This document shows, piece after piece, positions 21,172 through 50,816 of a stretch of DNA of 64,000 nucleotides; position 1 is the stretch's first letter; every line of letters begins with the position of its first letter. Location: IMG/VR virus record IMGVR_UViG_3300027759_000045, positions 282,857-346,856 of that record; one strand, given 5' to 3'. The translations under genes were made by a program, and so were the position numbers. The notes beneath the pieces were generated by a model that was not told the origin of the DNA, made no database searches, and saw nothing but the letters and a program-made list of their open reading frames with translations.

Positions 21172-21191
21172 TATTTATGTTGCGTCGCAAT
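21172..21191 (-). promoter_or_regulatory. TGC-N3-GCA palindrome fused to a late promoter
   Basis: Minus strand TTGCGACGCAACATAAATA. Confidence 0.6.
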
Positions 21192-21226
21192 ATACCTAGT
21201 GGTTTCTACTAATAAAATAGTCAAAA

Positions 21227-21252
21227 ATAAACCCACTTGAAAGTGGGTTTAT
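21227..21252. terminator. Hairpin terminator
   Basis: Perfect inverted repeat ATAAACCCACTT-ga-AAGTGGGTTTAT; T-tract on the minus strand. Confidence 0.85.
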
Positions 21253-21426
21253 GTGGTACCGTGTGTTTCGTGATACCGTTTAAGCGCCAGCATTCTGGCC
21301 ACGTATAATCTATATTGAACGTAATCGGAAAGTTCGTCGTCCGGAACTAGTTGTCCAAACTCTGCGCTTCTCCGATTACGCCCAAATTTGACTTCATCAT
21401 CTATGACAAAGTCTTCATCATCAAGA

Positions 21427-21639
21427 TTATTTCGCGGCTGGAGTAGCGGCTTTGCTGTCTGCTTTAGGTGCGTCTTTCTTAGCAGGCTCACTTTTTGCAG
21501 GCGTTGCTGTCGCAGGAGCGGCAGGGGCTGTGGCAGCAGGTTTGGCTTCTGCTTTCTTTTCTTCTTTCTTGGCAGCAGGTGCTTGAGCAAATGCAGAAAG
21601 AGCAACAGTGGTGGCGATTAAAGCGATAAGTTGTTTCAT
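21427..21639 (-). CDS. Exported Ala/Lys/Pro-rich small protein
   Basis: AAGGAG SD; signal peptide MKQLIALIATTVALSAFA-Q. Confidence 0.8.
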   Translation of the reverse strand: MKQLIALIATTVALSAFAQAPAAKKEEKKAEAKPAATAPAAPATATPAKSEPAKKDAPKADSKAATPAAK

Positions 21640-21715
21640 GGTATCTCCTTGATTAGAAACTGTAGACCTGGACTTTCCTGGCTACACATATATAACGCCA
21701 CAGCCTGCACATCGG

Positions 21716-21744
21716 TTGACACAGAATTGGTATTTTGTTATAAT
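21716..21744 (+). promoter_or_regulatory. sigma70 early promoter P1
   Basis: TTGACA-17 bp-TATAAT. Confidence 0.85.
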
Positions 21745-21772
21745 TTGGGCATATAGTAAAAAAAAGGCACAT

Positions 21773-22174
21773 ATGGAATTGCACGTTGAAGCCGGACCCA
21801 AAACCAAACGCTACATTGAAGCACTGGTTCCCAGCATGTTGGCCCAGCTTGGACTTGCTAAAAATCAAAAATTGCTGATGATCAAAGTGGACCCTGATCT
21901 AGATGAATTGGGCACCACAATTCCCTTGACAGGAATTGACACTTACTTGGTGGTGTTAAAACCCACTAGAGATCTGTATGCCCTGGGCGTTACCCTGGCC
22001 CATGAGCTGGTGCATGTACGACAGATGGCTAGAGGCATACTAAAAATCATGCCAAAAGGCAAAAAATGGCGGGGCAAATACTATGGCAGAAATGTGGCAT
22101 ATTTACAACAGCCCTGGGAATTAGATGCCTTTGCCCGGCAAGAAATTGTGTTTCGCAGAGCAATTGAGTTGTGA
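21773..22174 (+). CDS. Zincin-like metallopeptidase
   Basis: LAHELVHVRQ (HExxH), PWELDA; start at MELHVE after an AAGG SD. Confidence 0.75.
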   Translation: MELHVEAGPKTKRYIEALVPSMLAQLGLAKNQKLLMIKVDPDLDELGTTIPLTGIDTYLVVLKPTRDLYALGVTLAHELVHVRQMARGILKIMPKGKKWRGKYYGRNVAYLQQPWELDAFARQEIVFRRAIEL

Positions 22175-22180
22175 TTTCGG

Positions 22181-22209
22181 TTGACCAATAATTCCCGAAC
22201 TGCTATAAT
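22181..22209 (+). promoter_or_regulatory. sigma70 early promoter P2
   Basis: TTGACC-aataattcccgaactgc-TATAAT. Confidence 0.85.
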
Positions 22210-22215
22210 CATAGT

Positions 22216-22449
22216 ATGAAATTAGATACAAATGAAATTTTGCAGTGGGCCGGGGCTATTTTTATAGTAGCAGGCCATAGCCTAAATGCAGTGGGTCCAA
22301 CAGCCCATCCTTACAATATCCTTACATTTTTTATTGGGACTATTTTGTTCCTGATCTGGACTGTGCGTGTTGCAAATAAACCACAGATGTTTGTAAATCT
22401 TGTAAGTGTTGCAATTGGGCTGATTGGGCTGATAAAAGCCATTGGTTGA
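22216..22449 (+). CDS. Small multi-TM membrane protein
   Basis: Three hydrophobic segments; ATG 6 nt after the -10 box. Confidence 0.75.
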   Translation: MKLDTNEILQWAGAIFIVAGHSLNAVGPTAHPYNILTFFIGTILFLIWTVRVANKPQMFVNLVSVAIGLIGLIKAIG

Positions 22450-22474
22450 CCGAATATTGCCCTTTTGCTATAAT
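22446..22474 (+). promoter_or_regulatory. sigma70 early promoter P3
   Basis: TTGACC-gaatattgcccttttgc-TATAAT. Confidence 0.85.
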
Positions 22475-22504
22475 ATAGCATAGTTTAACAAAAAGGAGCC
22501 AAAA

Positions 22505-22834
22505 ATGACTTTAAGATACGAAACAGTTGGTGAAATGATTACTCAAAACGAACAAGAAAAATCAATCCGCGTCGCGGTTGGACGAGACATGCAACGTCAA
22601 CGTGAAATTGGCATGTATGGCATCACCGAAGCTGACATGTGTGAAAACATCGAATCTTCGATCACATTCAAAACTTCGGGTCCTGCAATGATTGTGGCCA
22701 GCTTGATGAGTGATGCACAAGAGATGATGGCTTACGAAAAGCCCAATTCCCGCACTATTGAAGCTCAGCGTCAACTGCTCAATCGTGCTAAATTTGTCTT
22801 GTTTACCTACATCATGGACAAACAAAACGGTTGA
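22505..22834 (+). CDS. Hypothetical early protein (109 aa)
   Basis: AAGGAG SD. Confidence 0.75.
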   Translation: MTLRYETVGEMITQNEQEKSIRVAVGRDMQRQREIGMYGITEADMCENIESSITFKTSGPAMIVASLMSDAQEMMAYEKPNSRTIEAQRQLLNRAKFVLFTYIMDKQNG

Positions 22835-22859
22835 CCCGAAATTCCCAAACTGTTATAAT
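22831..22859 (+). promoter_or_regulatory. sigma70 early promoter P4
   Basis: TTGACC-cgaaattcccaaactgt-TATAAT. Confidence 0.85.
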
Positions 22860-22889
22860 ACTTGTATAGAAACTAAAAAGGATTCCGAA

Positions 22890-23243
22890 ATGACAGCAAT
22901 AGCAACACAGATCACAGAGCAGTTGGTACAAGATGCAACCAATGAAGCAGGCATTCAGGCACGTACAGCGGCCAAGGCATTCCACGCCAAACATGGCGAT
23001 CGTGATGCTTGTGGATTTGCTTGGGTCAATGTGTTTGGCGTTCGCTCAAACTCAAAATTGGGCAAGTGGTTGCAGGCCGCAGGCTTCCGTAAGGACTACA
23101 CAGGTGCATTGAGCCTGTGGAACCCCAGTGGCTTCCCAACACAGAGCATCAGCATTTTGGAAGCAGGTGCAGAAGCCTATGCCGAAGTACTGAAGACCAA
23201 ACTGGGCCTGACACAGGTCTACGCCGGAAGCAGATTAGATTGA
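22890..23243 (+). CDS. Hypothetical early protein
   Basis: AAGGA SD before MTAIATQ; CGFAWV motif. Confidence 0.75.
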   Translation: MTAIATQITEQLVQDATNEAGIQARTAAKAFHAKHGDRDACGFAWVNVFGVRSNSKLGKWLQAAGFRKDYTGALSLWNPSGFPTQSISILEAGAEAYAEVLKTKLGLTQVYAGSRLD

Positions 23244-23272
23244 TTGACCGATAATTCCCAAACTGCTATAAT
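23244..23272 (+). promoter_or_regulatory. sigma70 early promoter P5
   Basis: TTGACC-gataattcccaaactgc-TATAAT. Confidence 0.85.
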
Positions 23273-23301
23273 ATACACATAGTAAGAAAAAAGGAAAAAA
23301 G

Positions 23302-23502
23302 ATGTCAAGTTTTGCCGAAGATGTATTTGCAATTAATCCCAATATCACAGCAGAGAATGATGTTCTTGCACTAGGGTTTGAGGTTGTAAAAAAAGCACAA
23401 GGACTCAAGTCCGCCCGGTACTATTTTTGGTACCATGAAGATTTCCCTTCAGATTTAATTAATGAATATTTTTGGTTGCAACAACAGAAAGAGGTAGCGT
23501 AA
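23302..23502 (+). CDS. Hypothetical early protein (66 aa)
   Basis: AAGGA SD. Confidence 0.7.
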   Translation: MSSFAEDVFAINPNITAENDVLALGFEVVKKAQGLKSARYYFWYHEDFPSDLINEYFWLQQQKEVA

Positions 23503-23503
23503 A

Positions 23504-23980
23504 ATGGGTACACGTTCAAGAATTGGTGTCATGCACGGCGACGTTTGTAAATCAGTCTACTGTCACTGGGACGGCTATCTGGACCACAATGGTGTAATAT
23601 TGCAAGAGCACTATTATGACAGTGCCAAAGCCAACCACCTGGTGTCACTGGGCGACATTTCTTCTTTGGCTCGCAACATTGACTTTCCAGATGGCGAGTT
23701 TCATACTTTTGGTTCTCCTATGGAAAATGTAACTGTGTTTTACGGTCGTGACCGTGATGAAGACGGCACAGATTTTGCAACAGATCATACCTTTGAAGCG
23801 TTCTTTGAACGTGCCAAAAATTGCGGTGCAGAGTGGTATTACATTATGAAAGATGGTGTATGGTACGTGGGCAATACACATGAAAATGACGCCCGGTATT
23901 ACCAAAAGTTGGTGTTGTTATTGAAGGCCTTAGTGGACGAAATGGAAGTCAGCAAGACCTGGGACTCAGTTGACCTGTAA
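23504..23980 (+). CDS. Phage early protein (YCHWDGY motif)
   Basis: MGTRSRIG..YCHWDGY; GAGG SD. Confidence 0.75.
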   Translation: MGTRSRIGVMHGDVCKSVYCHWDGYLDHNGVILQEHYYDSAKANHLVSLGDISSLARNIDFPDGEFHTFGSPMENVTVFYGRDRDEDGTDFATDHTFEAFFERAKNCGAEWYYIMKDGVWYVGNTHENDARYYQKLVLLLKALVDEMEVSKTWDSVDL

Positions 23981-23998
23981 TTCCCAAACTGCTATAAT
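23970..23998 (+). promoter_or_regulatory. sigma70 early promoter P6
   Basis: TTGACC-tgtaattcccaaactgc-TATAAT. Confidence 0.85.
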
Positions 23999-24029
23999 AC
24001 ACACATAGTAAACGAAACAGGAGCCTGAG

Positions 24030-24302
24030 ATGGATATCAAAGAAATTAACTCTGCAATTATGTTTGGTAATTTGACCAATGATCAGTTGTCCAGTGTGAT
24101 TGATGCAGTGAAGTTTGCCCGAGCGCAACTGACCCAACAAAAGAAACGCAGTTTCTCAATCGGCGACAAGGTAAAGTTTACCAGCAATCGCAATGGATTG
24201 ACATACGTTGGCAACGTTCGTAAAGTTAAAATTAAATTTGTGCTGGTTAGTACGCCAGGCGGTGTGTTCAATGTGCCAGCCAACATGTTGGAGACAGCAT
24301 GA
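24030..24302 (+). CDS. Hypothetical early protein, SH3-like C-terminus
   Basis: AGGAG SD; FSIGDKVKF..GNVRKV. Confidence 0.75.
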   Translation: MDIKEINSAIMFGNLTNDQLSSVIDAVKFARAQLTQQKKRSFSIGDKVKFTSNRNGLTYVGNVRKVKIKFVLVSTPGGVFNVPANMLETA

Positions 24303-24478
24303 ACAACAAGATCTTCAGTTACAAAATGCAGATGCAACTGACCGAACAAGAACTGGCCCAGTTCCGTGCCGCGTTTGCCGAGTTACAAAATGAAGTAACA
24401 GAAATATTCTTAGAAACAGAACAGCACAATGGCTTTCAAGCCGCCAATAAAGTGATCAATCGTGTTCGGAACAGGTAA
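24299..24478 (+). CDS. Hypothetical protein (59 aa), not in ORF track
   Basis: MNNKIFSYKMQMQLTEQELAQFRAAF..; ATGA overlap and GGAG SD. Confidence 0.65.
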   Translation: MNNKIFSYKMQMQLTEQELAQFRAAFAELQNEVTEIFLETEQHNGFQAANKVINRVRNR

Positions 24479-24520
24479 GTGCCCGCACCTAGTTTCCGTC
24501 AACAAATCAGGAGAAAGACA

Positions 24521-24943
24521 ATGGGACTTGACATGTATGCATACGTGGCCGCAAAGGAAGGCCAACAACGTGAGTTTTATGAGAGTGCCGAATTTGATGA
24601 TGATACCAAAGATTTTGTTAACAAGACAGTAGAACAGCCTCGTGAGATTGCTTACTGGCGCAAGCATCCTAATCTGCATGGCTGGATGGAACAACTTTGG
24701 AAAAGTCGCAATGGCGGCAACTGTGATGGCAGCAACTTCAACGGCATTGAGTTAGAACTTACATGGGCGGATCTTGAAGCACTTGAACTGGATGTCATTG
24801 CTGGCACACTGCCCAGTACGTCAGGTTTCTTTTTTGGCAATGAAGCAGATGAACACTATCGAGAACAAGATCTCAAGTTTGTCCGCGACGCTCGTGCAGA
24901 ATTGTTTTGTGGATTGAAAGTATTTTACAATAGTAGTTGGTAA
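24521..24943 (+). CDS. Phage early protein (GLDMY/YWRKH motifs)
   Basis: AGGAG SD before MGLDMYAY. Confidence 0.75.
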   Translation: MGLDMYAYVAAKEGQQREFYESAEFDDDTKDFVNKTVEQPREIAYWRKHPNLHGWMEQLWKSRNGGNCDGSNFNGIELELTWADLEALELDVIAGTLPSTSGFFFGNEADEHYREQDLKFVRDARAELFCGLKVFYNSSW

Positions 24944-24949
24944 CATCAT

Positions 24950-25375
24950 ATGAAAATTGGACTTAGTTATAGCCGTTGCGTTCTAGACATTGTCGAAGGT
25001 CGTGTGGCCATTGAAGATGTGCTGGTATTAATCACTCGTACAGATTTTAATCCATGTGATGACGAACAGTGGGCAGGGATCTGGGATGGATACACCTTGG
25101 GTAGATTAAGCAATCCTGAATGGGGTCACTATGACTTTAACAGCAAGGACGACGAGGACAAGTTCCGTAGTGTGAGCTGTATGCTGTACGAAGATGGCAG
25201 AATGCATCAGCCTCGACAGTTTGGAGCTCGCCCAAGACGTCGACCCGAAATCTGGTTGGAAACAGTATTGCCTGACAGTGAGCTGGAATCTCGACCCGCT
25301 GTGAAAGATGCCTGGGATCAGTTTCAAACTCTAGCCGGTTTGACCAATGTCAAGCTAGACCGAGAATATCAATGA
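24950..25375 (+). CDS. Hypothetical protein (141 aa)
   Basis: ORF track; operon packing. Confidence 0.7.
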   Translation: MKIGLSYSRCVLDIVEGRVAIEDVLVLITRTDFNPCDDEQWAGIWDGYTLGRLSNPEWGHYDFNSKDDEDKFRSVSCMLYEDGRMHQPRQFGARPRRRPEIWLETVLPDSELESRPAVKDAWDQFQTLAGLTNVKLDREYQ

Positions 25376-25836
25376 AGAAAATCTATTACGAAAAAAAAGG
25401 CCGCAGGTATGTGCCTGTGAGTGAGTACGACAGCGAGTACTTGGACAGTTTCTCTCGAGGCACACATCTTGTAATGTGCTATCCGGGCGGACAGAGTCGT
25501 CGTTTCAATATTGATCCTGCTTATGCTCCTATGATTGCCGCTGGCCGTGTTGCTGAAGAAGCTATCTGCGAGGTGATTCGCAAAGTTAGCGAACTACGTC
25601 CACAACAAACTCCTATCACTCTGGGACAAAAGAAAGCCTGGGAGAAATTGGCCAAAGAATTTGGCAGCGAACTTGCCACATTGTCTGGGCTATGCATACG
25701 TGACTGTGCCGAAGCAGGGGTCAAGGCCATGCAGGCAGAAGCTGACAAATTGATGAAGCACGAAAGTGTTCGAGTGGCATATGAGCAATTCCTATTGGTA
25801 TGTAAACTAACACAATCTGACTCAGAACGAAAATAA
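25372..25836 (+). CDS. Hypothetical protein (154 aa)
   Basis: ATGA overlap. Confidence 0.7.
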   Translation: MKKIYYEKKGRRYVPVSEYDSEYLDSFSRGTHLVMCYPGGQSRRFNIDPAYAPMIAAGRVAEEAICEVIRKVSELRPQQTPITLGQKKAWEKLAKEFGSELATLSGLCIRDCAEAGVKAMQAEADKLMKHESVRVAYEQFLLVCKLTQSDSERK

Positions 25837-25840
25837 ATAT

Positions 25841-27214
25841 ATGAATGAAACAAACTTCTCAGACCCAAGGTTTGCGGGCACAATGGTAACAGGTTGGATT
25901 CATGACCTGGAAAGCTCGGACAGTCGAATACACAAAGAAAAAACTATTGAAAAGGCATTGGTAGCCGCCCAGTTGGGCAGTTCTGATGCACAGGCCTTCT
26001 TGTTCAATTGTTATCAGGCCTACAACCCTTTTTATGTGTTTGGCATCCGACAAGTGCCCGAGACTGAGGGCTTAACTGGTCAATCAAATCCATGGCCTAA
26101 GTTTTGGGCGTTGTTGGAAAGTCTACGTACCCGTAGCGTCACAGGTAATCGAGCACGTGAGGCCATTGATGAATGTAGCCAACAGTTTGACAGTGAAGAA
26201 TGGAACAACGTATGTCGTCGTGTCATTATTAAAGACCTGCGTTGTGGGATATCAGAGAAGACACTGAACAAAGTTCTGGGCCGAACTGAATGGAAGATCC
26301 CGGTGTTCAGTTGCCAACTGGCACAGGACAGTACAGACCATCCTAAGAAACTTCGAGGCATCAAACGTCTGGAAGTCAAGCTGGATGGTGTGCGTGTGTT
26401 GGCAGTTGTGAATGGATCTGCGTGTACATTGTACAGCCGTAATGGCAAAGAGTTTGAGAACTTCCCACAGATTGCAGACTTTATTGAAGAACATCGCAAA
26501 GCATTCCAACGTGATTCTGCCTTTGGCGGACAGTTTGTGTTGGATGGTGAGATTGTGGGCAAGAATTTCCAGGACTTGATGAAACAAGCACAACGCAAAC
26601 GAGATGCCAAAACCACAGACATGATTTATCATGTATTTGATATCTTGCCACTGAGTGAGTTCCGCGATGGTTTCTGTAATCTACAGCAACACAACCGTAT
26701 CGATCTGTTGAAACGTACACAAACACACCTGCCAGAATCTGGCTGTGTGCAGATCATGCCCGGCATGGATGTGGACTTGGACACAGCCGAAGGACATGAT
26801 GTCATGCGCAGGTTTGCCGAAGCCAGTGTGGAAGAAGGCTACGAAGGTATCATGATCAAAAGCATGGATGCGCCATATGAGTGCCGACGCAGTGACTTTT
26901 GGATGAAATGGAAACCCACAATCACAGTTGATCTCAATATTGTAGGTTTTGAAGAAGGAACTGGTCGCAATCAGGGCCGGTTGGGTGCTATAATATGTGA
27001 AGGAGTTGATAATGACAGAAATATTCGTGTTAATGTTGGTAGCGGTTTGTCTGATAGCAATCGCGATGAGTATTGGGCCGCTCGCGATGAGCTTCTTGCT
27101 CGGGTGGTTGAGGTTGAAGCGGACGCAGTTACTCAAAACCAAGACGGATCATACAGTTTGAGATTTCCTCGCTTTGTGCGATTCCGTGGATTTGAACCAG
27201 GAGAGAAATTGTGA
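25841..27214 (+). CDS. lig: ATP-dependent DNA ligase
   Basis: EVKLDGVR, LDGEI, EGIMIK, WMKWKP, OB-domain SLRFPRF. Confidence 0.95.
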   Translation: MNETNFSDPRFAGTMVTGWIHDLESSDSRIHKEKTIEKALVAAQLGSSDAQAFLFNCYQAYNPFYVFGIRQVPETEGLTGQSNPWPKFWALLESLRTRSVTGNRAREAIDECSQQFDSEEWNNVCRRVIIKDLRCGISEKTLNKVLGRTEWKIPVFSCQLAQDSTDHPKKLRGIKRLEVKLDGVRVLAVVNGSACTLYSRNGKEFENFPQIADFIEEHRKAFQRDSAFGGQFVLDGEIVGKNFQDLMKQAQRKRDAKTTDMIYHVFDILPLSEFRDGFCNLQQHNRIDLLKRTQTHLPESGCVQIMPGMDVDLDTAEGHDVMRRFAEASVEEGYEGIMIKSMDAPYECRRSDFWMKWKPTITVDLNIVGFEEGTGRNQGRLGAIICEGVDNDRNIRVNVGSGLSDSNRDEYWAARDELLARVVEVEADAVTQNQDGSYSLRFPRFVRFRGFEPGEKL

Positions 27215-27281
27215 AGGTACACCAAAAGTATTGACATATTAAACAGATTGTTATATACTACATGTTATTAAGGAAAACATC

Positions 27282-27494
27282 ATGGCGAAAACTAAAACAG
27301 TAAACAAAATCAGTGACAAATTGGTCAAGGTCGGCGAATCATTCTCAGTGTACATGTACGACAATGCATACATGATTGAAGTAAGTGGCCGCGACAGTGA
27401 AAACGACTACAAAACAGTCAAGCTCATGGTTCCTGCATTGGATCAATTGCAGGCCCTGATCAAAGAAACTACAGAAATGGACCGGGATGACTAA
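27282..27494 (+). CDS. Hypothetical protein (70 aa)
   Basis: TTGACA..TATACT promoter and AAGGA SD upstream. Confidence 0.7.
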   Translation: MAKTKTVNKISDKLVKVGESFSVYMYDNAYMIEVSGRDSENDYKTVKLMVPALDQLQALIKETTEMDRDD

Positions 27495-27496
27495 TC

Positions 27497-27907
27497 ATGG
27501 CAACTTGGATATTAAAAACCCTGCACAAAAAGTCTGCTGTTGAACGACAGTTCTGGTTCAAAGCCGGCAAAACAATCATTCGCGAAGAAGGTTATCGGTG
27601 GGGCGAATTCTATTGTGAAAGCGATGATCGACCAGAGATTGACTTGGTCAATGCTGATGGATATAATCTAAGCGAAAGCGACTACGACTGGGAACTGACC
27701 AGTCTTGATGATGGCTGTTGGGCTGATTGGACTTTTCCAGAAGACATGACGGAAGAAGAGCAAGCAGAGATTGAAGCAGCCTGGGATGAAGATTACTTTG
27801 ACGGCATGGAAGAATTGGGGTGGCGCAATGATGATACAGAATACATCTTACGAGGTCCGTTGGAACTGTCTGATGAAGATGGTACAGTAATAGCACAAGG
27901 AGAATGA
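27497..27907 (+). CDS. Acidic hypothetical protein (136 aa)
   Basis: Operon packing. Confidence 0.7.
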   Translation: MATWILKTLHKKSAVERQFWFKAGKTIIREEGYRWGEFYCESDDRPEIDLVNADGYNLSESDYDWELTSLDDGCWADWTFPEDMTEEEQAEIEAAWDEDYFDGMEELGWRNDDTEYILRGPLELSDEDGTVIAQGE

Positions 27908-28086
27908 TGATGGGTAAATTTTTAGAATGGTGTAATCGTAACAGTAAATCAATTAGCCTTACAATCGGCGGGTTGAATCTACTGTCTGGGCTAAGTGCAT
28001 TGATTAATAGCAACTATGCACTTGCTATAGTGGGATTTACAATTGGTGGCGCCCTTATATTTGACGCTTATCGGGGATTCAAATGA
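27904..28086 (+). CDS. Small 2-TM membrane protein
   Basis: GGAG SD; two hydrophobic segments. Confidence 0.65.
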   Translation: MMMGKFLEWCNRNSKSISLTIGGLNLLSGLSALINSNYALAIVGFTIGGALIFDAYRGFK

Positions 28087-28634: not shown

Positions 28635-28635
28635 T

Positions 28636-29100
28636 ATGGCCGTAATAAAAAGTGTACGGTCTGATTATTATTTAAATTTTATCAAGGACGATCCTGTTCG
28701 TCCTCACTTACCTGTCTTTTGGCGTGTGGATCCCAATCGTGAAGTGTATGTGTTAGAAGATGATACTACAAATGAAGTACTGGCCGTAATCTGTGCGGCA
28801 TTCTGCAATCAAGTTCCCACAGACGAAGGCGAGTTAGAAAAGTTTTCTACTCCTACCACTCCCGATGAACCTATTGGTGAAGTCGTGGTGTTCTACACAG
28901 TATGGAGTTACCGACCTGGTGCTGGCCGAGAACTTGTTTTGGGTGCAGCCAAACTGATCAAAGATACAATGCCAGTAAAACGATTTATAACATTAAGTCC
29001 GCAAACTGAAATGGCTCGTAAATTTCATTTGCGTAACGGTGCAGTTGTATTACAAGTCAACACAACATCGGTCAATTACGAATATCTATTCAATGAATGA
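28636..29100 (+). CDS. Possible GNAT-fold protein
   Basis: FYTVWSYRPGAGRELV resembles an acetyl-CoA-binding loop. Confidence 0.5.
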   Translation: MAVIKSVRSDYYLNFIKDDPVRPHLPVFWRVDPNREVYVLEDDTTNEVLAVICAAFCNQVPTDEGELEKFSTPTTPDEPIGEVVVFYTVWSYRPGAGRELVLGAAKLIKDTMPVKRFITLSPQTEMARKFHLRNGAVVLQVNTTSVNYEYLFNE

Positions 29101-31050: not shown

Positions 31051-31051
31051 C

Positions 31052-43122: not shown

Positions 43123-44036
43123 TAGACAGCCGTAACGAATGGGATCCACTGGAAGCCATAGTAGTTGGCAGTGCAACCAACGCCAATTGGCCCAGCAATG
43201 ATCCGGTATTTGCTATAGAATCGTCTAAAACATCCTGGACCGAAACACCTGTGCCAACTGGTCCTGTACCCAACTGGATTGTTGAAGAAGCCAACGCGGA
43301 ACTTGATCGCCTGTCAGAGATATTAGCTGACTACGGCGCAGTAGTGTACAGACCCAAACCGATGGACTTTGTTGAGTTAGGTGGAATGTACAACTATTGT
43401 CCACGTGATAGATTGTTAGTAGCAGGCGACACTGTGGTTGATGTAAACATGATGTATCCTTGCCGGAATCAAGAAACCGAAGGCCTACAACAAATTATTC
43501 AACAAGCTAACACAGTGTTAACAATGCCCCGGGATCAAGGCATGATTTTAGATGCTGCCAATGTATGCAGACTAGGTGGCACCTGGTTATACCTACAAAG
43601 TCACAGTGGTAATTTGGCCGCATATGATTGGCTGTGCAATCAATTCCCTGCGATTGACATTGAGCTGTGTAACTTTTATTCCGGAGTACACATTGACAGT
43701 ACCATTGTGCCTGTGCGGGAAGGATTGGTATTGTTGAATGCCAGTCGTGTAACTGAATCAAATTGTCCGGCAGCGTTTGATTCCTGGGAAAAAATCTACA
43801 TCGACGATGTAGTGCCACAGGGCTTTTATCAATATCCGTATGCATCCAAATGGATTGCCATGAATATGTTGGTGCTGGATCCCCGAACAGTTATTGTAGA
43901 TGCCGCACAAACAGCACTAATTACTGTATTAAAGTCAAAAGGCATTGATGCTATACCTCATACGCTAAGCCACAGCCGTACATTAGGTGGTGGGTTTCAT
44001 TGCGTGACACTTGACACACGGAGAAAACATGATTGA
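43119..44036 (+). CDS. Amidinotransferase (glycine/inosamine-phosphate amidinotransferase family)
   Basis: NEWDPLEAIVVG, YCPRD, HIDST, GGGFHCVT. Confidence 0.9.
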   Translation: MIDSRNEWDPLEAIVVGSATNANWPSNDPVFAIESSKTSWTETPVPTGPVPNWIVEEANAELDRLSEILADYGAVVYRPKPMDFVELGGMYNYCPRDRLLVAGDTVVDVNMMYPCRNQETEGLQQIIQQANTVLTMPRDQGMILDAANVCRLGGTWLYLQSHSGNLAAYDWLCNQFPAIDIELCNFYSGVHIDSTIVPVREGLVLLNASRVTESNCPAAFDSWEKIYIDDVVPQGFYQYPYASKWIAMNMLVLDPRTVIVDAAQTALITVLKSKGIDAIPHTLSHSRTLGGGFHCVTLDTRRKHD

Positions 44037-45306
44037 TACTGATGTAATAACACGCATGATAGAACAGCAAATTGCTGACACAGTCAATGATCATGTGTAC
44101 GGAGTGCTTACATCAACTGAGTGGTCCAAACCTCTTGAAGATAAGATATTAAAGTACACACAAGATCGTATACTTTCAAAATTTGCCAACTCAACAACCA
44201 TGCCTGAAATCCTTGAAGCTGTTAAAACCACGGTTGCCGAATTATTTGCTGCTGGCACAGTTCCTGGCGTTGCACAGTTTGTCAACAACAATCTCATTAA
44301 GACCACTGTTGACCAAGAAGTAGATCGCATCACACGAACCGCAGTTACAGAATTGTTCACGGACGTGGTATGGTTAGAAAAGATTGAAAAAACGCTTAAT
44401 CAAATGGTAGTGCACCGCACAGTGGCAACCATTGGGTCAATTGACATCAACACTGTTATTCATCAGCGTGTGGATGAAAATATGGCTCGATTAAAAATTG
44501 AATTGTTAAACAATTTTTCCAGCACAGGCATTGATGACCAGGCCACATCTTGCCAACTGACAATCTTAGATGAAACAACAGTGATTGAAAATGTGTTAAC
44601 TGCCCGTGCTGCCAAGTTTGTAGAGTCAGTCACAGTTAAAGACCTGGCAGTTACCGGATCTATCAACACAGATAATCAAAGTTGGAATGTGTTGGCTGCC
44701 GACATAAGTGCCAAGACGCTAGCACAACTGAATCAAGACTGGAAAGATCGTTTGGTTGAGCAGGTTGCAGAAGAAATTAAACGGAATGGCATTAAATTTG
44801 ACAATGTCACTGTTGATGACCAGTTGTTGGTGTCCGGCAACCAGTTGGCACGAACTATCACACAAAGTAATTTACAAAAAGTAGGTCGGCTTCGAGATCT
44901 GACAGTGGAAGGTGAAACCAGTCTAAACGAAACTGTTGTTGTAGTTAAAAAGCGGCTGGGTGTCAATACAGAACATCCGGACTCTGCACTGAATGTATGG
45001 GACGAAGAAATCAGTATATCCGCAGGCAAGTACAAGAATCAAGAAGCATATATTGGTACCAGTCGCGACCAAGCACTGAACATTGGCGTTAATAAACTAC
45101 CTCAACTGACCATTGGAACAGATGGCATAACTGCTGTCAAAAAATTACGTGTGGCACAGTACATGATAGGACACGGAACAACTGTTCCTAACTATTCCGG
45201 AACCAAGGGCGACATCGTATTCAATGCTGATCCCATGCCCAATGGTGCCTTTGCCTGGGTGTGTCTAGGCAACTACAAATGGAAAACACTAAAGGCTGTT
45301 GAATGA
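44029..45306 (+). CDS. Probable virion/fibre-associated protein (425 aa)
   Basis: GGAG SD; C-terminal GDIVFN..AWVCLG..W motif. Confidence 0.6.
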   Translation: MIDTDVITRMIEQQIADTVNDHVYGVLTSTEWSKPLEDKILKYTQDRILSKFANSTTMPEILEAVKTTVAELFAAGTVPGVAQFVNNNLIKTTVDQEVDRITRTAVTELFTDVVWLEKIEKTLNQMVVHRTVATIGSIDINTVIHQRVDENMARLKIELLNNFSSTGIDDQATSCQLTILDETTVIENVLTARAAKFVESVTVKDLAVTGSINTDNQSWNVLAADISAKTLAQLNQDWKDRLVEQVAEEIKRNGIKFDNVTVDDQLLVSGNQLARTITQSNLQKVGRLRDLTVEGETSLNETVVVVKKRLGVNTEHPDSALNVWDEEISISAGKYKNQEAYIGTSRDQALNIGVNKLPQLTIGTDGITAVKKLRVAQYMIGHGTTVPNYSGTKGDIVFNADPMPNGAFAWVCLGNYKWKTLKAVE

Positions 45307-45860
45307 GAATCAATTGGGTTGTGTCAGACTCCACTGTGTTACCACCAGACGTTGATGTCACTGTGCTCAAAGACATTGCAGCCATCTGGGGTGGCTGGCG
45401 CACCTGGCGCGGTTGTAGCACTGACAATGTTGTGTGTGATGATGCAGGCAAAGCACGTGAGTTGCTAAAACGCAAAATGAATGAAATGTGCAACATGTAT
45501 GTGCCTTCATCAATCTATGCCGAGCTTGACCGACCCCGAGGCGTACAACTGTACGAAGGGCAGTTTACTTTTGAAATAGACAACAAAGACGAATTGATCA
45601 GTATTCAGTTAGTGGCCGGTCAAAGTGATGTTGTGTTGCTTGTGGGATTTGACTGGACCGAACGACCCAAGAGTGCAGATCGGTTAACAGCGCATCGAGC
45701 AACAAATTATCAGCGTTTTGTCAAAGATGCCATTTCGAGCAATCCCGCAGTGCAATGGGTTTTGGTTGACCATGCAGGAGAAGTCTGGCCCGAATTGGCT
45801 GAATTCGAAAATCTTACCAAAGACACGTTGGACAACGTGATCGAACTACTAAAGACTTGA
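45303..45860 (+). CDS. Hypothetical protein, possible glycosyltransferase-like fold
   Basis: ATGA overlap; DNVVCDD and LLVGFD motifs. Confidence 0.5.
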   Translation: MRINWVVSDSTVLPPDVDVTVLKDIAAIWGGWRTWRGCSTDNVVCDDAGKARELLKRKMNEMCNMYVPSSIYAELDRPRGVQLYEGQFTFEIDNKDELISIQLVAGQSDVVLLVGFDWTERPKSADRLTAHRATNYQRFVKDAISSNPAVQWVLVDHAGEVWPELAEFENLTKDTLDNVIELLKT

Positions 45861-45896
45861 CACCTTAGAAAATGTAATATCTCAGTTTAAGTAATG

Positions 45897-46166
45897 TTAC
45901 TCAACCACAATGTCAACGTTGACATCTGGGTATAGATCGATCCAACAAGATAGTACTAAATTTTTATAGGCTTCTGCAGTAGCGTTATCGACCCAGGCCC
46001 AGCGGTTGACACACCTAACCCCTGTGCTAGGATTGTTTGTAAACTCAAGTTCTCCGGTGTATTTTCCTTCAGCTTGCCAGGCAGCGCATTGATTCATAAT
46101 ATTATCATGCTGTGGCTGTAAGTGAAACGGTGTAGTTTGGGTAAGTGTAAGGATGGTTTTAATCAT
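45897..46166 (-). CDS. Hypothetical protein, tandem copy 2
   Basis: Paralog of 46193-46459. Confidence 0.75.
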   Translation of the reverse strand: MIKTILTLTQTTPFHLQPQHDNIMNQCAAWQAEGKYTGELEFTNNPSTGVRCVNRWAWVDNATAEAYKNLVLSCWIDLYPDVNVDIVVE

Positions 46167-46192
46167 ATGATATTCTACAATTTTAAGTAATG

Positions 46193-46459
46193 TTACTCAA
46201 CCACAATGTCAACGTTGATATCTGGGTATAGATCGATCCAACTAGCCAGTACTAAATTTTTATAGGCTTCTGCAGTAGCGTTATCGACCCAGGCCCAGCG
46301 TTCAACACGTCTAACTCCTGTAACAGTATTGTGTGTGATGTCAAGTTCTCCGGTGTATTTTCCTTCGGTTTGCCAGGTAGCGCATTGGTTCATAATATTA
46401 TCCATTTGTGGCTGTGGAAATGGTGCAGTGTGGGTAATTGTAAGGATGGTTTTAATCAT
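46193..46459 (-). CDS. Hypothetical protein, tandem copy 1
   Basis: TAAATA at 46479-46484 and GGAG SD. Confidence 0.75.
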   Translation of the reverse strand: MIKTILTITHTAPFPQPQMDNIMNQCATWQTEGKYTGELDITHNTVTGVRRVERWAWVDNATAEAYKNLVLASWIDLYPDINVDIVVE

Positions 46460-46495
46460 ATGGTATTCTCCGATGAATTATTTATCAAAAAGCAT

Positions 46496-46524
46496 TTGAC
46501 TTTTAATTAAACATACTGTACAAT
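46496..46524 (+). promoter_or_regulatory. sigma70 promoter for uvdE
   Basis: TTGACT-17 bp-TACAAT; ATG 6 nt downstream. Confidence 0.7.
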
Positions 46525-46530
46525 TACAGC

Positions 46531-47547
46531 ATGACTACACCTAGAATTGGCTTTTGTTGCAAGTGGCTAAATGACCCCACAGAATGTGGTGGCATGAAAG
46601 TCAATGCACGGGACCGTGACCTAAACGGCAGATCAACTACCATGAGGTGGCTTCGCGAACATGCCAGCGAAGCAGACCAGCGTCAGTGGGACATTATGAA
46701 TCACAACACCGCTGCCGCTGTGAAGATGATCGAACGTGTGGCCACATTGCCAGAAGGTCGTAGAATGGTACGGTTAGGTAGCGAAATGCTACAGGGCTAT
46801 ACCGAACCTTCGTGGATTGACTGGTGGCAACGTACAGAGATCCAGGATCACTGTGCCCAAATCTTTGCACCCATTGGTGAAACTGCTCGTAGACTGGGAG
46901 TTAGATTGAGTTTTCACCCTGGGCAGTTCTGTGTTTTGGCCAGTGAGAATCCCGGCATCGTAAATAGAAGTATACAGGAGTTTGAATATCATGCAGATAT
47001 GGTCAGGTGGATGGGATACGGCAAGACTTTTCAGGATTTTAAAATCAACGTACACATCTCGGGTAAACAAGGCCCCGCAGGTATTCGCTCTGCCCTCCAG
47101 CGTCTTAGTCCCGAAGCAAGAAACTGTATCACCATCGAAAACGACGAAAACGCCTGGGGAATTGATTCAAGCCTTGAACTTGCCAACGACTGTGCCCTTG
47201 TGCTTGATATACACCATCACTGGATCCGTACAGGAGACTACATTCAACCCTCCGACGATAGAGTTTCGCGTGTGATTGATTCCTGGCGCGGAGTAAGGCC
47301 GGCACTGCATTATTCAGTCAGCCGAGAAGACTTTCTGGTGGGGCATGACGCAGATGTATTGCCGGACATGGCCGCATTGTTGGCACAGGGCTATAAAAAA
47401 CAAAAACTACGAGCACACAGTGACTTCTATTGGAATTCAGCTGTGACTGACTGGGCATTGACCTTTGCTGAAAAGTTTGATATCCAATGCGAAGCCAAAG
47501 GCAAAAATTTGGCCAGTGAACAGGTTTATGAACGATATATTGCTTAA
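46531..47547 (+). CDS. uvdE: UV-damage endonuclease
   Basis: RIGFCC, RLGSE, SFHPGQF, IEND, LDIHHH, HYS, AHSD, EAKGK. Confidence 0.9.
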   Translation: MTTPRIGFCCKWLNDPTECGGMKVNARDRDLNGRSTTMRWLREHASEADQRQWDIMNHNTAAAVKMIERVATLPEGRRMVRLGSEMLQGYTEPSWIDWWQRTEIQDHCAQIFAPIGETARRLGVRLSFHPGQFCVLASENPGIVNRSIQEFEYHADMVRWMGYGKTFQDFKINVHISGKQGPAGIRSALQRLSPEARNCITIENDENAWGIDSSLELANDCALVLDIHHHWIRTGDYIQPSDDRVSRVIDSWRGVRPALHYSVSREDFLVGHDADVLPDMAALLAQGYKKQKLRAHSDFYWNSAVTDWALTFAEKFDIQCEAKGKNLASEQVYERYIA

Positions 47548-47815
47548 CACATTTGACTGGATACGAGATGATTTTAAGTCCCACCGAACTCGCTTTGTTA
47601 TTGAGTTGCTTGCTTGGGCTATTAGTATTGGCTGTTCAATTACTATGGCACTTACCGTACCCACGCCTCCGCTTCTTGCTCTTTACCCTGTGTGGATCTT
47701 TGGCTGTGCTCTGTATGCTTGGGCTAGTTGGACTAGGAAATCTTTTGGCATGCTGGCTAACTATCTATTGTTAACCACAATCGATAGTGTGGGATTAATT
47801 CGCATGCTTACATAA
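47528..47815 (+). CDS. Small multi-TM membrane protein
   Basis: Three hydrophobic helices; start at MNDILL. Confidence 0.7.
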   Translation: MNDILLNTFDWIRDDFKSHRTRFVIELLAWAISIGCSITMALTVPTPPLLALYPVWIFGCALYAWASWTRKSFGMLANYLLLTTIDSVGLIRMLT

Positions 47816-47833
47816 TATGCTCAATAAATAGAT

Positions 47834-48478
47834 GTGATGAAAACTATTGCACTATTTGTACATCAACCCAAATGCTCTGTGCAAAGCGGCAACGGAATTA
47901 TACAAGCATTAAGCCCACATTACAGTTTTAAAATTTTTACCCGCCACGAAGTTGAGCGGGATTTCTTTGACGATGTAGATTGTGTAGCAATACCCGGGGG
48001 CATTGGTGATGCTAGTAGTTTTAAATATTTGTTAAAAGACAACGGGTCACGTATACGTGACTTTGTAAACAATGGCGGAGCATATTTAGGAATCTGCATG
48101 GGCGCATATTGGGCCGGTAGCAATTACTTTGATATAATTAAAGATGTTGATGCAGAACAATACATGTGCAGGCCAGGGACAGATACAAGACGCCCCCATG
48201 CTAAGAATATTGATATAACTTGGAACAATACGCCAATGAAGATGTTTTGGTATGATGGGTGTGCTCTAGTAGGTGATGAGTCAAAGTTCAAAACTGTGGC
48301 TCGTTATACAGGAAATAACGACCCCATGGCTATTGTGCAAGGCCGTACAGGATTAATCGGGTGCCACCCCGAAAGCACACCTCATTGGTATTCTTCCTAC
48401 AGTTGGATGCGTGATCAATTCCACAACGGCCAACATCATCAATTATTGTTAAGATTTGTTAACGAATTACTGTTGTAA
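47834..48478 (+). CDS. BPL-N / class I glutamine amidotransferase-like protein
   Basis: PGG, YLGICMGAY, GCHPE. Confidence 0.8.
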   Translation: MMKTIALFVHQPKCSVQSGNGIIQALSPHYSFKIFTRHEVERDFFDDVDCVAIPGGIGDASSFKYLLKDNGSRIRDFVNNGGAYLGICMGAYWAGSNYFDIIKDVDAEQYMCRPGTDTRRPHAKNIDITWNNTPMKMFWYDGCALVGDESKFKTVARYTGNNDPMAIVQGRTGLIGCHPESTPHWYSSYSWMRDQFHNGQHHQLLLRFVNELLL

Positions 48479-48511
48479 CAAAATTGTAACAGTCTTTGTC
48501 TTAAATAACAG

Positions 48512-49375
48512 ATGAAGACATATCGCTCAATCTTTGTTAGTGATGTCCACCTTGGAACCAAAGATTGTCAAGCCGATCGTCTCAATAACTTCCTCAAACA
48601 CAACTCTTGCGACACACTGTACCTAGTAGGCGATATTATCGACGCCTGGAAGATTCAACAAAACAAGTGGCGTTGGAAACAAAGCCACACTAATGTAGTT
48701 CGTCGTGTATTAGGTCATGCCAAGCGTGGCACTAGAGTTGTATTCATTGCAGGCAACCATGATGAATTCTTAAGACCTATGATACCATATGGTTTTAGTT
48801 TTGGTCTTGTTGAGATACACAATCAAATAGAGCACATAGGTGCAGATGGTCGACACTATCTAGTTGTTCACGGAGACCTGTTTGACGGCATTACCCGTCT
48901 GGCACCGTGGATAGCATTCCTGGGAGACAAAGCATATGACTTTGTTCTTGAACTCAACAATAAGTTTAATTGGATACGTCGTCGTATGGGTTTCGGCTAC
49001 TGGAGCCTTAGCCGTTATCTTAAATACAAGGTTAAAAAAGCTGTAGACTTTGTGTTCAAGTTTGAAGAGAACTTGGCTAACTACTGCAAGAAGCGTGGAT
49101 TTGATGGTGTCATCTGTGGGCACATACATCACGCAGAGATAAAAGAAATCAATGGCGTAACTTATATGAATGACGGTGACTGGGTCGAGTCATGTACCGC
49201 ACTGGTAGAGCACTGGGACGGTAAGTGGGAAATCATAACCTGGACCAAGGAGAAGGACGATGTGGATACTGATAATACTGGCAGTTCACTTAAACGACTC
49301 AAAAGACGTGCCGGGGCGAGTGGAATTGACATTCCAGGACCAACACACTTGCCTGCAGGTGTTAAGTACAATTAA
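48512..49375 (+). CDS. LpxH-like UDP-2,3-diacylglucosamine hydrolase family
   Basis: SDVHLG, GDIID, GNHD, HGD, GHIH. Confidence 0.85.
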   Translation: MKTYRSIFVSDVHLGTKDCQADRLNNFLKHNSCDTLYLVGDIIDAWKIQQNKWRWKQSHTNVVRRVLGHAKRGTRVVFIAGNHDEFLRPMIPYGFSFGLVEIHNQIEHIGADGRHYLVVHGDLFDGITRLAPWIAFLGDKAYDFVLELNNKFNWIRRRMGFGYWSLSRYLKYKVKKAVDFVFKFEENLANYCKKRGFDGVICGHIHHAEIKEINGVTYMNDGDWVESCTALVEHWDGKWEIITWTKEKDDVDTDNTGSSLKRLKRRAGASGIDIPGPTHLPAGVKYN

Positions 49376-49414
49376 GTACAAACTGAAATTTGAAAATTTT
49401 AAGGTGGTAGCAGA

Positions 49415-50131
49415 ATGCAAACGACAATAAGTGATAAAATTACCATAGTGGTACCTTGCAAGAATGAGGAAACGTACATTCATCATTTGTTAAACTCTCT
49501 AAGAGAACAAAACATTGGCACAACTAGAATCATCATTGCTGACTGCTCAACTGACAGTACTAGACAGGTTATACTAGACAACAAGGGTTTGTTAAATGTA
49601 GAAATCATTGAGGGTGGGCCTGTTAGCGTGGCCAAAAACTGTGGCGCACGGTTGGTCACTACTCCGTACATCTTGTTCATTGATGCTGATGTGCGTTTTT
49701 TTAAAAATACAGTGATTCAGGATGCTGTTGACACAATAGAATCAAAAAACTTGGACCTAATAGGTTTAAAAATAAAATGTTATGATCGAGACCCAAGAAC
49801 CAAGATTGGTTTTGTTATCTTTAACACCATAAATCACGCATTGAAATTCTTCTCTCCTTTTGCTGTAGGAGCATTTATGTTGACACGCAGAGATCGTTTT
49901 GAAGAATTTGGTGGGTTCCCTGAACAGTTTGCAACGTCAGAAGATTTCTTCTTAAGTCGCAAGTACAGTCCTAAAAAGTTTAAAATTGTTCGACACCACT
50001 TTGGTCAGGATAGTCGTAGATTCAAGAAGATGGGGTACATGGGCATGGCCAAATACCTTGTCAAGAACTTTGTCAATCGCAATAATCGAGCGTACTGGGA
50101 CAAGTTAGATTCATCCAAGTACTGGAATTAA
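49415..50131 (+). CDS. Glycosyltransferase family 2
   Basis: IVVPCKNE, DCSTD, FIDAD, SED. Confidence 0.9.
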   Translation: MQTTISDKITIVVPCKNEETYIHHLLNSLREQNIGTTRIIIADCSTDSTRQVILDNKGLLNVEIIEGGPVSVAKNCGARLVTTPYILFIDADVRFFKNTVIQDAVDTIESKNLDLIGLKIKCYDRDPRTKIGFVIFNTINHALKFFSPFAVGAFMLTRRDRFEEFGGFPEQFATSEDFFLSRKYSPKKFKIVRHHFGQDSRRFKKMGYMGMAKYLVKNFVNRNNRAYWDKLDSSKYWN

Positions 50132-50152
50132 AAAAGTCTCTTTCGAGACTTT

Positions 50153-50365
50153 TTACTTTACAACTGGTTTTTTGGGTGCCCGTGGTTTTGCTGGTGCTTT
50201 AGGCTTGGGCGCTGTCTTGGGTTTGGCAATTGGTTTAGCAACTGGGGTAGGGTCTGCTTTTGCCACCGGTGCTGGTGTCTCAACCTTGTAGGGTGCAGAC
50301 GCCTGGACTTCTACTTCGAGTTGAGTTGGTTTACCAAACAAGAATTCTTTGATTTTTGTTAACAT
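50153..50365 (-). CDS. Small Pro/Lys/Ala-rich protein
   Basis: TAAATA at 50384-50389; AGGAG SD. Confidence 0.75.
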   Translation of the reverse strand: MLTKIKEFLFGKPTQLEVEVQASAPYKVETPAPVAKADPTPVAKPIAKPKTAPKPKAPAKPRAPKKPVVK

Positions 50366-50445
50366 AATGTTCTCCTATACAGTTATTTATTACTCGTAAA
50401 CGGCTAACAAAATTAGTGACCATTCACTAATAAAAATACCAAAAG

Positions 50446-50467
50446 ATGTTGCGTTGCAACATAAATA
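50446..50467 (+). promoter_or_regulatory. TGC-N3-GCA palindrome fused to a late promoter
   Basis: ATGTTGCGTTGCAACATAAATA. Confidence 0.6.
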
Positions 50468-50537
50468 ATGTTACAATAGAACATAGGGTGCTGAATAGGT
50501 CGGGCCTTATGGTAAACTCGCTTAATAGGAGAAAATT

Positions 50538-50816
50538 ATGTTTACATTAGACGCAACAATCGACGCCGTTCAAACCGGTAAAAAACAATTTGTCAAGACA
50601 TTTGTTCAAAACGAAAAGGTAGCAGACGCAATGAACACTTTCATTGATGAGCAAGCTTCTTATACCAAAAAAGCTGCCAAAGTTGGTTCTGACACATTTG
50701 CTGTATTGTCCAGTGAAATGGTTAAAACTGCACAAGAAGCCACCAAGTTTGACTACACCAAGTTTGGTGAAGGTATCATGAAGGCTTACCAAACTACTCA
50801 ATCCAAAGCCAAATAA
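50538..50816 (+). CDS. Amphipathic helical protein, phasin-like
   Basis: AGGAG SD; Ala/Lys/Thr-rich helices; function inferred from composition and the upstream operator. Confidence 0.45.
   Translation: MFTLDATIDAVQTGKKQFVKTFVQNEKVADAMNTFIDEQASYTKKAAKVGSDTFAVLSSEMVKTAQEATKFDYTKFGEGIMKAYQTTQSKAK

Follow-up and report, generated by a model that had tools for sequence, protein, structure and literature searches.

A PhaR-box-type palindrome shared by two promoters of a freshwater jumbo phage

Why would two promoters lying 29 kb apart in the genome of a freshwater jumbo phage share an almost identical palindrome, and which protein could recognize it? The question was raised by a preliminary description of a 64,000-nucleotide stretch (hereafter the window; positions 282,857 to 346,856 of the 346,856-bp IMG/VR record IMGVR_UViG_3300027759_000045), in which two 20-mers with a TGC-N3-GCA core, each abutting TAAATA, were proposed to be operators of PhaR, the repressor that senses polyhydroxybutyrate (PHB) storage granules, placed in front of late genes, one of them phasin-like. 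We observed that the two 20-mers are indeed present, TTGCGACGCAACATAAATAA on the minus strand at 21171-21190 and TTGCGTTGCAACATAAATAA on the plus strand at 50449-50468, and that they agree at 18 of 20 positions, so that the observation itself is confirmed. Allowing up to 3 mismatches, they are the only two matches in the window (0.13 expected from shuffled sequences) and also the only two in the whole genome. The palindrome is longer than initially described: the site at 50446-50462 (+) is a perfect 7+3+7 inverted repeat, ATGTTGC-GTT-GCAACAT, whereas that at 21177-21193 (-), ATATTGC-GAC-GCAACAT, has 6 of 7 arm positions symmetric. In both cases the right arm shares its CAT with the first three bases of CATAAATA, the late-promoter word of this phage.

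At the first of these loci, the palindrome at 50446-50462 (+) covers the -35 and the spacer of a sigma-70-like core promoter (50449-50477, +), composed of TTGCGT (50449-50454), a 17-bp spacer and a TGtTACAAT extended -10 (TACAAT at 50472-50477). This promoter was read from the sequence and was not listed by a stricter consensus scan, but the TTGC..N17..TA(C/T)AAT arrangement is kept in relatives even where TAAATA is lost. CATAAATA is located at 50460-50467 (+). A conserved stem-loop is present at the 5' end of the leader (50485-50508, +), for which RNAalifold on 16 relatives gives 9 pairs, 5 of them with compensatory changes, and a weak, sub-threshold ROSE_3 match was observed at 50482-50543. 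The gene that follows (50538-50816, +; class A) encodes a 92-aa protein predicted to form three helices (AF2 model with pLDDT 71). Its family is large (452 cluster representatives) and was found only in phage and metagenome sequences, with no homologue in 401 Burkholderiales genomes; in lake metatranscriptome contigs the gene is the most covered part of the 3.5-kb stretch examined. A hairpin plus T-run at 50849-50888 (+), AATCCAGTTC ... GAACTGGATT followed by TTT, reads as the terminator of a monocistronic unit, although a terminator scan of 50100-51000 did not list it, probably because the loop is long.

At the second locus, CATAAATA (21172-21179, -) overlaps the right arm of the palindrome at 21177-21193 (-) and no sigma-70 -10 follows it; TAAATA followed by N3 and CAGTAGAAACC is kept in the relatives. 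A GTAGAAAC-CACGA-GTTTCTAC hairpin (21146-21166, -) is located at the predicted 5' end of the mRNA and belongs to the downstream copy (21156-21167) of the repeat AGTAGAAACCAC, whose upstream copy is at 21199-21210, 43 nt away, both the motif and its 43-nt spacing being conserved in relatives. An intrinsic terminator of the upstream gene (21227-21252, -), with an 11-pair stem followed by a T-run, sets the downstream genes apart as a transcription unit of their own. The first of these genes (20959-21126, -; class B) encodes a 55-aa DUF3563-like microprotein with the invariant motif ERLAEMFP..YQ..L, from a family of at least 3,960 clusters, and is followed by three further microprotein genes (20674-20962, -), of 34 aa (20858-20962), about 27 aa and hydrophobic (20772-20855), and 33 aa with a GWEVHP motif (20674-20775), in an order also found in relatives.

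Is the resemblance between the two sites more than coincidence? Chance alone is not a sufficient argument, since, by our own estimate, several pairs of arbitrary places matching at 18 of 20 positions are expected in 64 kb, and the loose published consensus TGNTGCN3GCAA occurs 9 times in the genome against 8.3 expected, although only the hits at these two loci are intergenic. The comparative evidence carries the weight. The exact 20-mer with a free spacer occurs at 71 IMG/VR loci, about 60 of them in front of the same two gene families, while the flanking sequence has diverged freely. In upstream regions chosen by protein only, the core is present in 27 of 34 class A and 26 of 49 class B regions, with about 1 expected from shuffles, the spacer varying freely and the outer arm base changing symmetrically. 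The palindrome also shifts relative to the promoter words between lineages, being found over the -35, inside the spacer, abutting TAAATA or about 10 bp further upstream, and therefore behaves as a separate module. In some phages, namely L110 and L160, class A and class B genes share one operon.

We then asked whether the element is of the PhaR type. It matches the footprinted Herbaspirillum seropedicae PhbF/PhaR consensus TG[N]TGC[N]3GCAA (PMC3206438), the class A site on both strands and the class B site when read on the plus strand, as well as the TGC/GCA core of R. sphaeroides PhaR (PMC3206438). In 151 sampled Burkholderiales genomes, 28 of the 30 best Phasin_2 genes have TGC-N3-GCA within 250 nt upstream, against 22 of 131 control windows, and the stricter form [TG]TGC-N3-GCA[AC] occurs in 17 of 30 against 0 of 131. 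Not every phasin gene carries such a box, as two phasin genes on Cupriavidus megaplasmids lack an obvious N3 box. A weight matrix built only from 54 sites of these 30 bacterial promoters ranks the two phage sites first (21177-21193, score 19.9) and second (50446-50462, score 18.7) among all positions of the phage genome; the training median is 21.1 and, apart from one site scoring 17.0 inside a coding region, the rest score 12.1 or less. In addition, TGTTGC-N3-GCAACA occurs in 210 of 401 Burkholderiales genomes, against 64 for the backwards control, whereas in Bacteroidota the figures are 28 of 151 against about 18, and Phasin_2 is the commonest neighbouring family at 30 sampled sites. Bacterial DUF3563 genes carry the same box (13 of 19 against 17 of 110 controls), one of them (L269) having, at -25, arms identical to those of the class B site, and all 21 DUF3563-bearing genomes have PhaR. 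The phage promoters differ from most of the 30 bacterial phasin promoters: the latter usually carry two boxes about 56 nt apart (about 55-60 nt), and each phage promoter carries one.

Are the genes behind these promoters late genes, and is the first a phasin, as was initially suggested? The word NATAAATA lies 15-22 nt before the start codons of baseplate wedge (E 7e-275), tail tube, head-tail adaptor and virion protein genes, and ATAAATA has 57 copies, 36 of them in the 6.9% of the genome that is intergenic, in agreement with a T4-type late-promoter word. However, in more distant relatives the class A promoter is of the sigma-70 type without TAAATA, so a late regulon is only part of the picture. 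The 92-aa protein is not demonstrably a phasin. The window protein has no Pfam hit, and Phasin_2 (PF09361), although the only recurrent family among relatives (7 of 27 and 7 of 99), is matched only below threshold, at best with 23.0 bits against a cut-off of 24.9. A profile-profile comparison (hhalign) with 30 genuine Burkholderiales phasins gives 2.8% probability, and comparisons with single phasins give less than 1%; fold searches were uninformative, and the all-helical model is compatible with binding to PHB granules but not diagnostic. For class B, the window protein also has no Pfam hit, whereas 4 of 29 relatives hit DUF3563 (PF12086), the top recurrent family, with a best E of 9.8e-5, and 77 of 100 named hits in an atlas search were DUF3563; hhalign against 14 bacterial DUF3563 proteins gives 85% probability (E 6e-6).

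No PhaR N-domain was found in the phage, and of the two sensors initially considered, one from the host or one of the phage's own, the former is therefore the one that fits. PhaR was identified in 107 of 151 Burkholderiales genomes. Nevertheless, the only cellular record holding a relative is a 62.5-kb contig in a Haliscomenobacter (Bacteroidota) MAG that has no PhaR, which we read, by inference, as a mis-binned phage contig. No PHB depolymerase or synthase was detected in the phage, so the suggestion that granules are mobilized to fuel virion production remains speculation. The preliminary interpretation is thus supported in part: the operator assignment holds up well, the phasin assignment does not.

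We propose, with a probability of roughly 0.65, that both sites are operators of the PhaR/PhbF type, dimer-symmetric palindromes with an invariant TGC-N3-GCA core, most likely bound by the PhaR of the host, inferred to be a PHB-making Burkholderiales bacterium. PhaR leaves DNA when it binds nascent PHB granules and returns when phasins cover the granule surface (model as reviewed in PMC9049629). In this view, free PhaR would block RNA polymerase at both promoters, which is consistent with the position of the box over the -35 and spacer at class A and against the late-promoter word at both sites, relative to predicted start sites. When the infected cell holds or makes PHB, both units would be released together, yielding the abundant 92-aa helical protein and the DUF3563-like microprotein with its three small partners. 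The analysis establishes the sequence identity of the operator, its deep conservation in phages, the presence of the same box at bacterial phasin and DUF3563 promoters and its position relative to promoter words, whereas PhaR binding, repression, release by PHB and any role of the products at granules, including PHB binding by the 92-aa protein, are inferred from sequence alone. The absence of detectable homology between class A and phasins also means that the logic of a phasin under PhaR does not transfer directly.

Other readings seem less likely. A different regulator, phage-encoded or from the host, with the same TTGC-N3-GCAA preference cannot be excluded in the absence of binding evidence; two sites per genome would suit a small phage-specific circuit and, since some automatic JGI names call class B proteins 'ArsR family' or 'HTH regulator', an autoregulating microprotein is conceivable. 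We consider this unlikely, because the same extended palindrome is enriched in Burkholderiales chromosomes, where it sits at phasin and DUF3563 promoters, so a cellular factor recognizes it, because it equals the footprinted PhbF site, and because class B is neutral to acidic and predicted as three short helices with no significant structural match. It is about as doubtful that the box is a passenger, captured together with a DUF3563 gene or promoter and persisting without mattering to the phage, or serving only as -35/spacer sequence. The similarity of class B to box-carrying bacterial genes makes such a capture plausible, and in class A the left arm doubles as a TTGC -35 element, but class A has no bacterial homologue in the genomes searched and yet keeps the box in diverged upstream regions, both arms are retained, including the right arm, which has no promoter role, and the box persists while its position relative to the -10 changes.

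A nucleic-acid hairpin, acting as a weak bidirectional terminator, an insulator or an RNA stem, is still less probable. A scan did flag ATGTTGCAACGCAACAT followed by CTTTTGG as terminator-like on the minus strand at 50446-50462, and symmetric arm changes are also what a stem would show; however, no gene ends upstream on that strand, a T-run is not consistently found on either side in class B relatives, the element lies upstream of the predicted start sites and so outside the mRNAs, and identical sites lie in divergent phasin-phaR intergenic regions in bacteria. Chance resemblance between two AT-rich promoter regions is, in our reading, already refuted by the comparative data and the matrix ranking.

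A broader hypothesis, which we regard as tentative and less likely than not, is that a widespread clade of freshwater jumbo phages has wired two highly expressed small-protein units into the PHB-granule sensor of the host, reading the carbon store of the cell through PhaR and answering with proteins that act at or on the granules, a phage-only analogue of phasins and a DUF3563 microprotein set. A further possibility is that the many replicating phage genome copies soak up PhaR and so switch on the host's own PHB regulon. Either way, DUF3563 would become a new member of the PhaR regulon in bacteria. Phages listen to host signals such as DNA damage or quorum signals, but our literature searches found no report of a phage promoter carrying the operator of the PHB-granule sensor. 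The element is conserved in a very large freshwater phage group, with thousands of class B and hundreds of class A clusters and, if it works as inferred, infection outcome in abundant lake bacteria depends on their carbon-storage state. The finding also gives a testable function for two large families of unknown small proteins, predicts that bacterial DUF3563 belongs to the PhaR regulon, and points to a PhaR-bearing, probably Burkholderiales, host for an uncultured jumbo phage clade.

The closest known elements are the PhaR/PhbF (AniA) operators of phasin and phaR promoters in Proteobacteria (H. seropedicae TG[N]TGC[N]3GCAA, R. sphaeroides CTGC-N3-GCAG), with which the phage sites share the core, the flanking bases, the dimer symmetry and the position over the core promoter, with scores within the range of bacterial sites; they differ in being in a virus genome, in front of genes that are not recognizable phasins, with one box instead of the usual pair, and in being fused to a phage late-promoter word that bacterial promoters lack. 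T4-type late promoters (TATAAATA, read by a phage late sigma) similarly precede structural genes at a short distance, but are not known to have been described with an abutting host-repressor operator. As with LexA/SOS boxes on prophage promoters, a host DNA-binding sensor would gate phage genes through an operator kept in the phage genome, but here the sensor reports carbon storage instead of DNA damage or phosphate, and the phage is a lytic-type jumbo myophage. Finally, the DUF3563 (PF12086) small proteins of Burkholderiales share with class B their size, helical layout, profile similarity and upstream box, whereas class B has its own invariant ERLAEMFP motif, fails the Pfam cut-off and leads an operon of three more microproteins that we did not see next to the bacterial genes.

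The two 20-mers of the preliminary description lie exactly where it placed them and are the only copies in the window and in the whole phage genome, so its observation is confirmed, although each site is longer than had been noted. Site 2 is a perfect 7+3+7 palindrome, ATGTTGC-GTT-GCAACAT (50446-50462), and site 1 is ATATTGC-GAC-GCAACAT (21177-21193, minus strand); the last three bases of each right arm are the first three of CATAAATA. The genome is a single complete record of 346,856 bp with terminal repeats, of which the window is the last 64 kb, and it belongs to a jumbo myophage for which no close relative was found in the GenBank phage collection, either by DNA or by protein, whereas its many relatives come from lake metagenomes. 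The word ATAAATA occurs 57 times, 36 of them in the 6.9% of the genome that our rough gene call leaves intergenic, and NATAAATA lies 15-22 nt before the start codons of a baseplate wedge gene (phrog_10646, E 7e-275), a tail tube gene, a head-tail adaptor gene and virion protein genes. This is the layout of T4-type late promoters, so the preliminary labelling of TAAATA as a late promoter is justified.

Site 2 precedes a monocistronic gene coding for a 92-aa protein, predicted to be formed by three helices (class A). The gene has a strong ribosome-binding site, a 5' leader hairpin with compensatory changes in 5 of 9 pairs among 16 relatives, and, after the stop codon, a hairpin plus T-run that we read as its terminator, although a terminator scan did not list it. 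The left arm of the palindrome also reads as a -35 (TTGCGT), followed 17 bp later by TGtTACAAT, so that a sigma-70-type promoter and a late-promoter word overlap under one palindrome. The leader (50482-50543), whose first hairpin is the one showing covariation, also gave a weak, sub-threshold match to the ROSE_3 RNA thermometer family (24 bits against 43, E 0.008). We also noticed a second palindrome, TTAGTGA-CCAT-TCACTAA (50413-50430), centred about 62 bp upstream of the predicted class A start site and conserved in most class A relatives, and a similar TTAGTAC-N4-GTACTAA in some class B upstream regions; its position suggests an activator site. Downstream, a near-consensus sigma-70 promoter (TTGACC, 17 bp, TATAAT; 11 of 12; 50839-50867) overlaps the class A terminator hairpin and faces the next gene (50945-51637). 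In lake metatranscriptome contigs the class A gene is the most covered part of the 3.5-kb stretch considered, which is only weak evidence of high expression.

Site 1 follows a terminator and precedes four microprotein genes (55, 34, about 27 and 33 aa), the 55-aa protein being the class B family. A direct repeat, AGTAGAAACCAC (21156-21167 and 21199-21210, minus strand), flanks this operator with a 43-nt spacing that is conserved in relatives, and its downstream copy forms the 5' hairpin GTAGAAAC-CACGA-GTTTCTAC. Just upstream of the microprotein operon, a 70-aa ORF (21427-21639, minus strand) has a signal peptide followed by an Ala/Lys/Pro-rich low-complexity tail, and overlaps a 118-aa ORF in another frame (21249-21605).

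A scan of IMG/VR for TTGC-N3-GCAACATAAATAA gave 71 loci, of which about 28 lie before class A genes and about 27 before class B genes, while a few lie before more distant small helical proteins and about ten look random. In order to avoid circularity, we then collected upstream regions chosen by protein only, and the TGC-N3/4-GCA core was present in 27 of 34 distinct class A regions and in 26 of 49 class B regions, against about one expected from shuffles. The three spacer bases vary freely, whereas the base outside the core changes on both arms together (TTGC..GCAA, GTGC..GCAC, CTGC..). The palindrome also moves relative to the promoter words, being found over the -35, inside the spacer after a consensus TTGACT, directly against TAAATA, or about 10 bp further upstream, which is how a separate protein-binding module behaves and not how part of a core promoter behaves. 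In distant class A relatives TAAATA is lost, but the palindrome and a TATAAT -10 remain. In two related phages (loci L110, 2006-2251, and L160, 1811-2131) a class A family gene (hhalign 97%) lies in the same operon as the class B gene, behind a single palindrome and TAAATA word, which links the two families functionally.

The PhbF (PhaR) site of H. seropedicae, confirmed by footprinting, is TG[N]TGC[N]3GCAA, and the PhaR site of R. sphaeroides is CTGC-N3-GCAG, the TGC and GCA triplets being described as essential (PMC3206438). Site 2 matches the Herbaspirillum consensus on both strands and site 1 on one strand. We tested this resemblance in bacterial genomes, using a Cupriavidus necator genome, reached through its plasmid phasin, as the centre for sampling its order. 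TGTTGC-N3-GCAACA occurs in 210 of 401 Burkholderiales genomes, against 64 for the backwards control (our count; one of the 401, G296, is unpublished and contributes only to this tally), while in Bacteroidota the figures are 28 of 151 against about 18. At 30 sampled sites, Phasin_2 is the commonest neighbouring family, but the same palindrome also lies next to kup potassium transporter genes (two genomes), minC (two genomes, one of them shared with a divergent phasin gene) and a DUF3141/acetate kinase pair in C. necator (loci L232, L235, L239, L256 and L257). In the other direction, 28 of the 30 best phasin genes have the core within 250 nt upstream, usually twice about 56 nt apart, against 22 of 131 control windows, and the stricter form was found in 17 of 30 against 0 of 131. 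Two phasin genes on Cupriavidus megaplasmids showed no clear N3 box, and were thus a poor test.

A weight matrix built only from these 54 bacterial sites and run over the whole phage genome puts the two phage sites first and second (19.9 and 18.7, for a training median of 21.1), a test that is independent of how the sites were first noticed. The third-best hit (CATTTTGCACAGCACCATA, 10131-10149) scores 17.0 and lies about 40 nt inside the start of the ORF at 10091-11374; it is probably due to chance but stands well above the next hits, as everything else scores 12.1 or less. No PhaR N-domain was found in the phage genome, whereas 107 of 151 Burkholderiales genomes have one. Searches of the phage genome also found no Phasin_2, no intracellular or extracellular PHB depolymerase and no PhaC N-domain, and neither DUF3563 nor PhaR was found on three Burkholderiales megaplasmids.

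Class B seems to be related to DUF3563, which is the top recurrent Pfam family among its relatives and dominates the atlas hits; a profile comparison with 14 bacterial DUF3563 proteins gave 85% probability over the full length. DUF3563 is present in 16-21 of 151 Burkholderiales genomes and in none of 14 control genomes. Of 19 bacterial DUF3563 genes, 13 have the N3 core upstream, against 17 of 110 controls, and one has the same arms as site 1; bacterial DUF3563 genes (loci L260-L283) often have a PhaR-type box within 200 nt upstream, and all 21 DUF3563-bearing genomes have PhaR. DUF3563 is therefore a predicted member of the PhaR regulon, and the phage appears to have kept both the gene type and the operator. 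Class A is a different matter: Phasin_2 is the only Pfam family that recurs among its relatives, but always below the cut-off, a profile comparison with 30 genuine phasins gave 2.8%, and the family has no member in the 401 Burkholderiales genomes. Class A may be a functional analogue of phasins, but we cannot assign it to them. Fold searches with both AF2 models returned only short helical matches with E above 1, a profile search of PDB sequences gave nothing meaningful, and tblastn of class A and class B relatives against plasmids found nothing useful.

The operator type and the DUF3563 link point to a PhaR-bearing Burkholderiales bacterium as the presumed host, and the 43% G+C of the phage would suit a low-G+C member, although this is a guess. 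The single related contig in a cellular record (L205, NZ_JBBAKG010000036.1, 62.5 kb), which encodes a class B relative, lies in a Haliscomenobacter MAG. We rejected Haliscomenobacter as host, since only this contig of the MAG is phage-like, the two palindrome hits of the MAG lie inside bacterial genes, the rest of the MAG shows no phage-type sites and the MAG has no PhaR. Furthermore, the phage uses Shine-Dalgarno sites (32% of crude gene starts against 6% in controls) and TTGACA/TATAAT-type, proteobacterial promoter words. We therefore read this contig as a mis-binned contig of this phage clade.

The best reading is that host PhaR would occupy both palindromes, block the overlapping promoters and be drawn off when PHB granules are present, so that the two units would be expressed together according to the carbon store of the cell (PhaR cycle as reviewed in PMC9049629). 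The sequence of the palindromes, their conservation in phages, their position relative to the promoter words and the presence of the same box at bacterial phasin and DUF3563 promoters are observed directly, whereas PhaR binding, repression, release by PHB and any role of the gene products at granules are inferred. We consider it very likely that the element is a real, selected operator, and give a probability of about 0.65 to PhaR being the binder with PHB-dependent control. The preliminary interpretation, in which late genes are placed under a carbon-storage sensor and a phasin-like product may act on PHB granules, is thus only partly supported: the late-promoter label and the operator type hold, but the class A protein cannot be classified as a phasin.

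The main alternatives are that another regulator with the same sequence preference binds the palindromes, that the element is a passenger, or that it functions as a hairpin; a reading of the palindrome as a terminator was rejected.

Literature searches for phage phasins, DUF3563 or Polynucleobacter jumbo phages gave nothing relevant, and we found no report of this operator in conserved use on the promoters of a large phage clade. The operator type itself is known; what differs here from the known PhaR-type operators is its conserved use on the promoters of such a clade, where it is fused to a late-promoter word.
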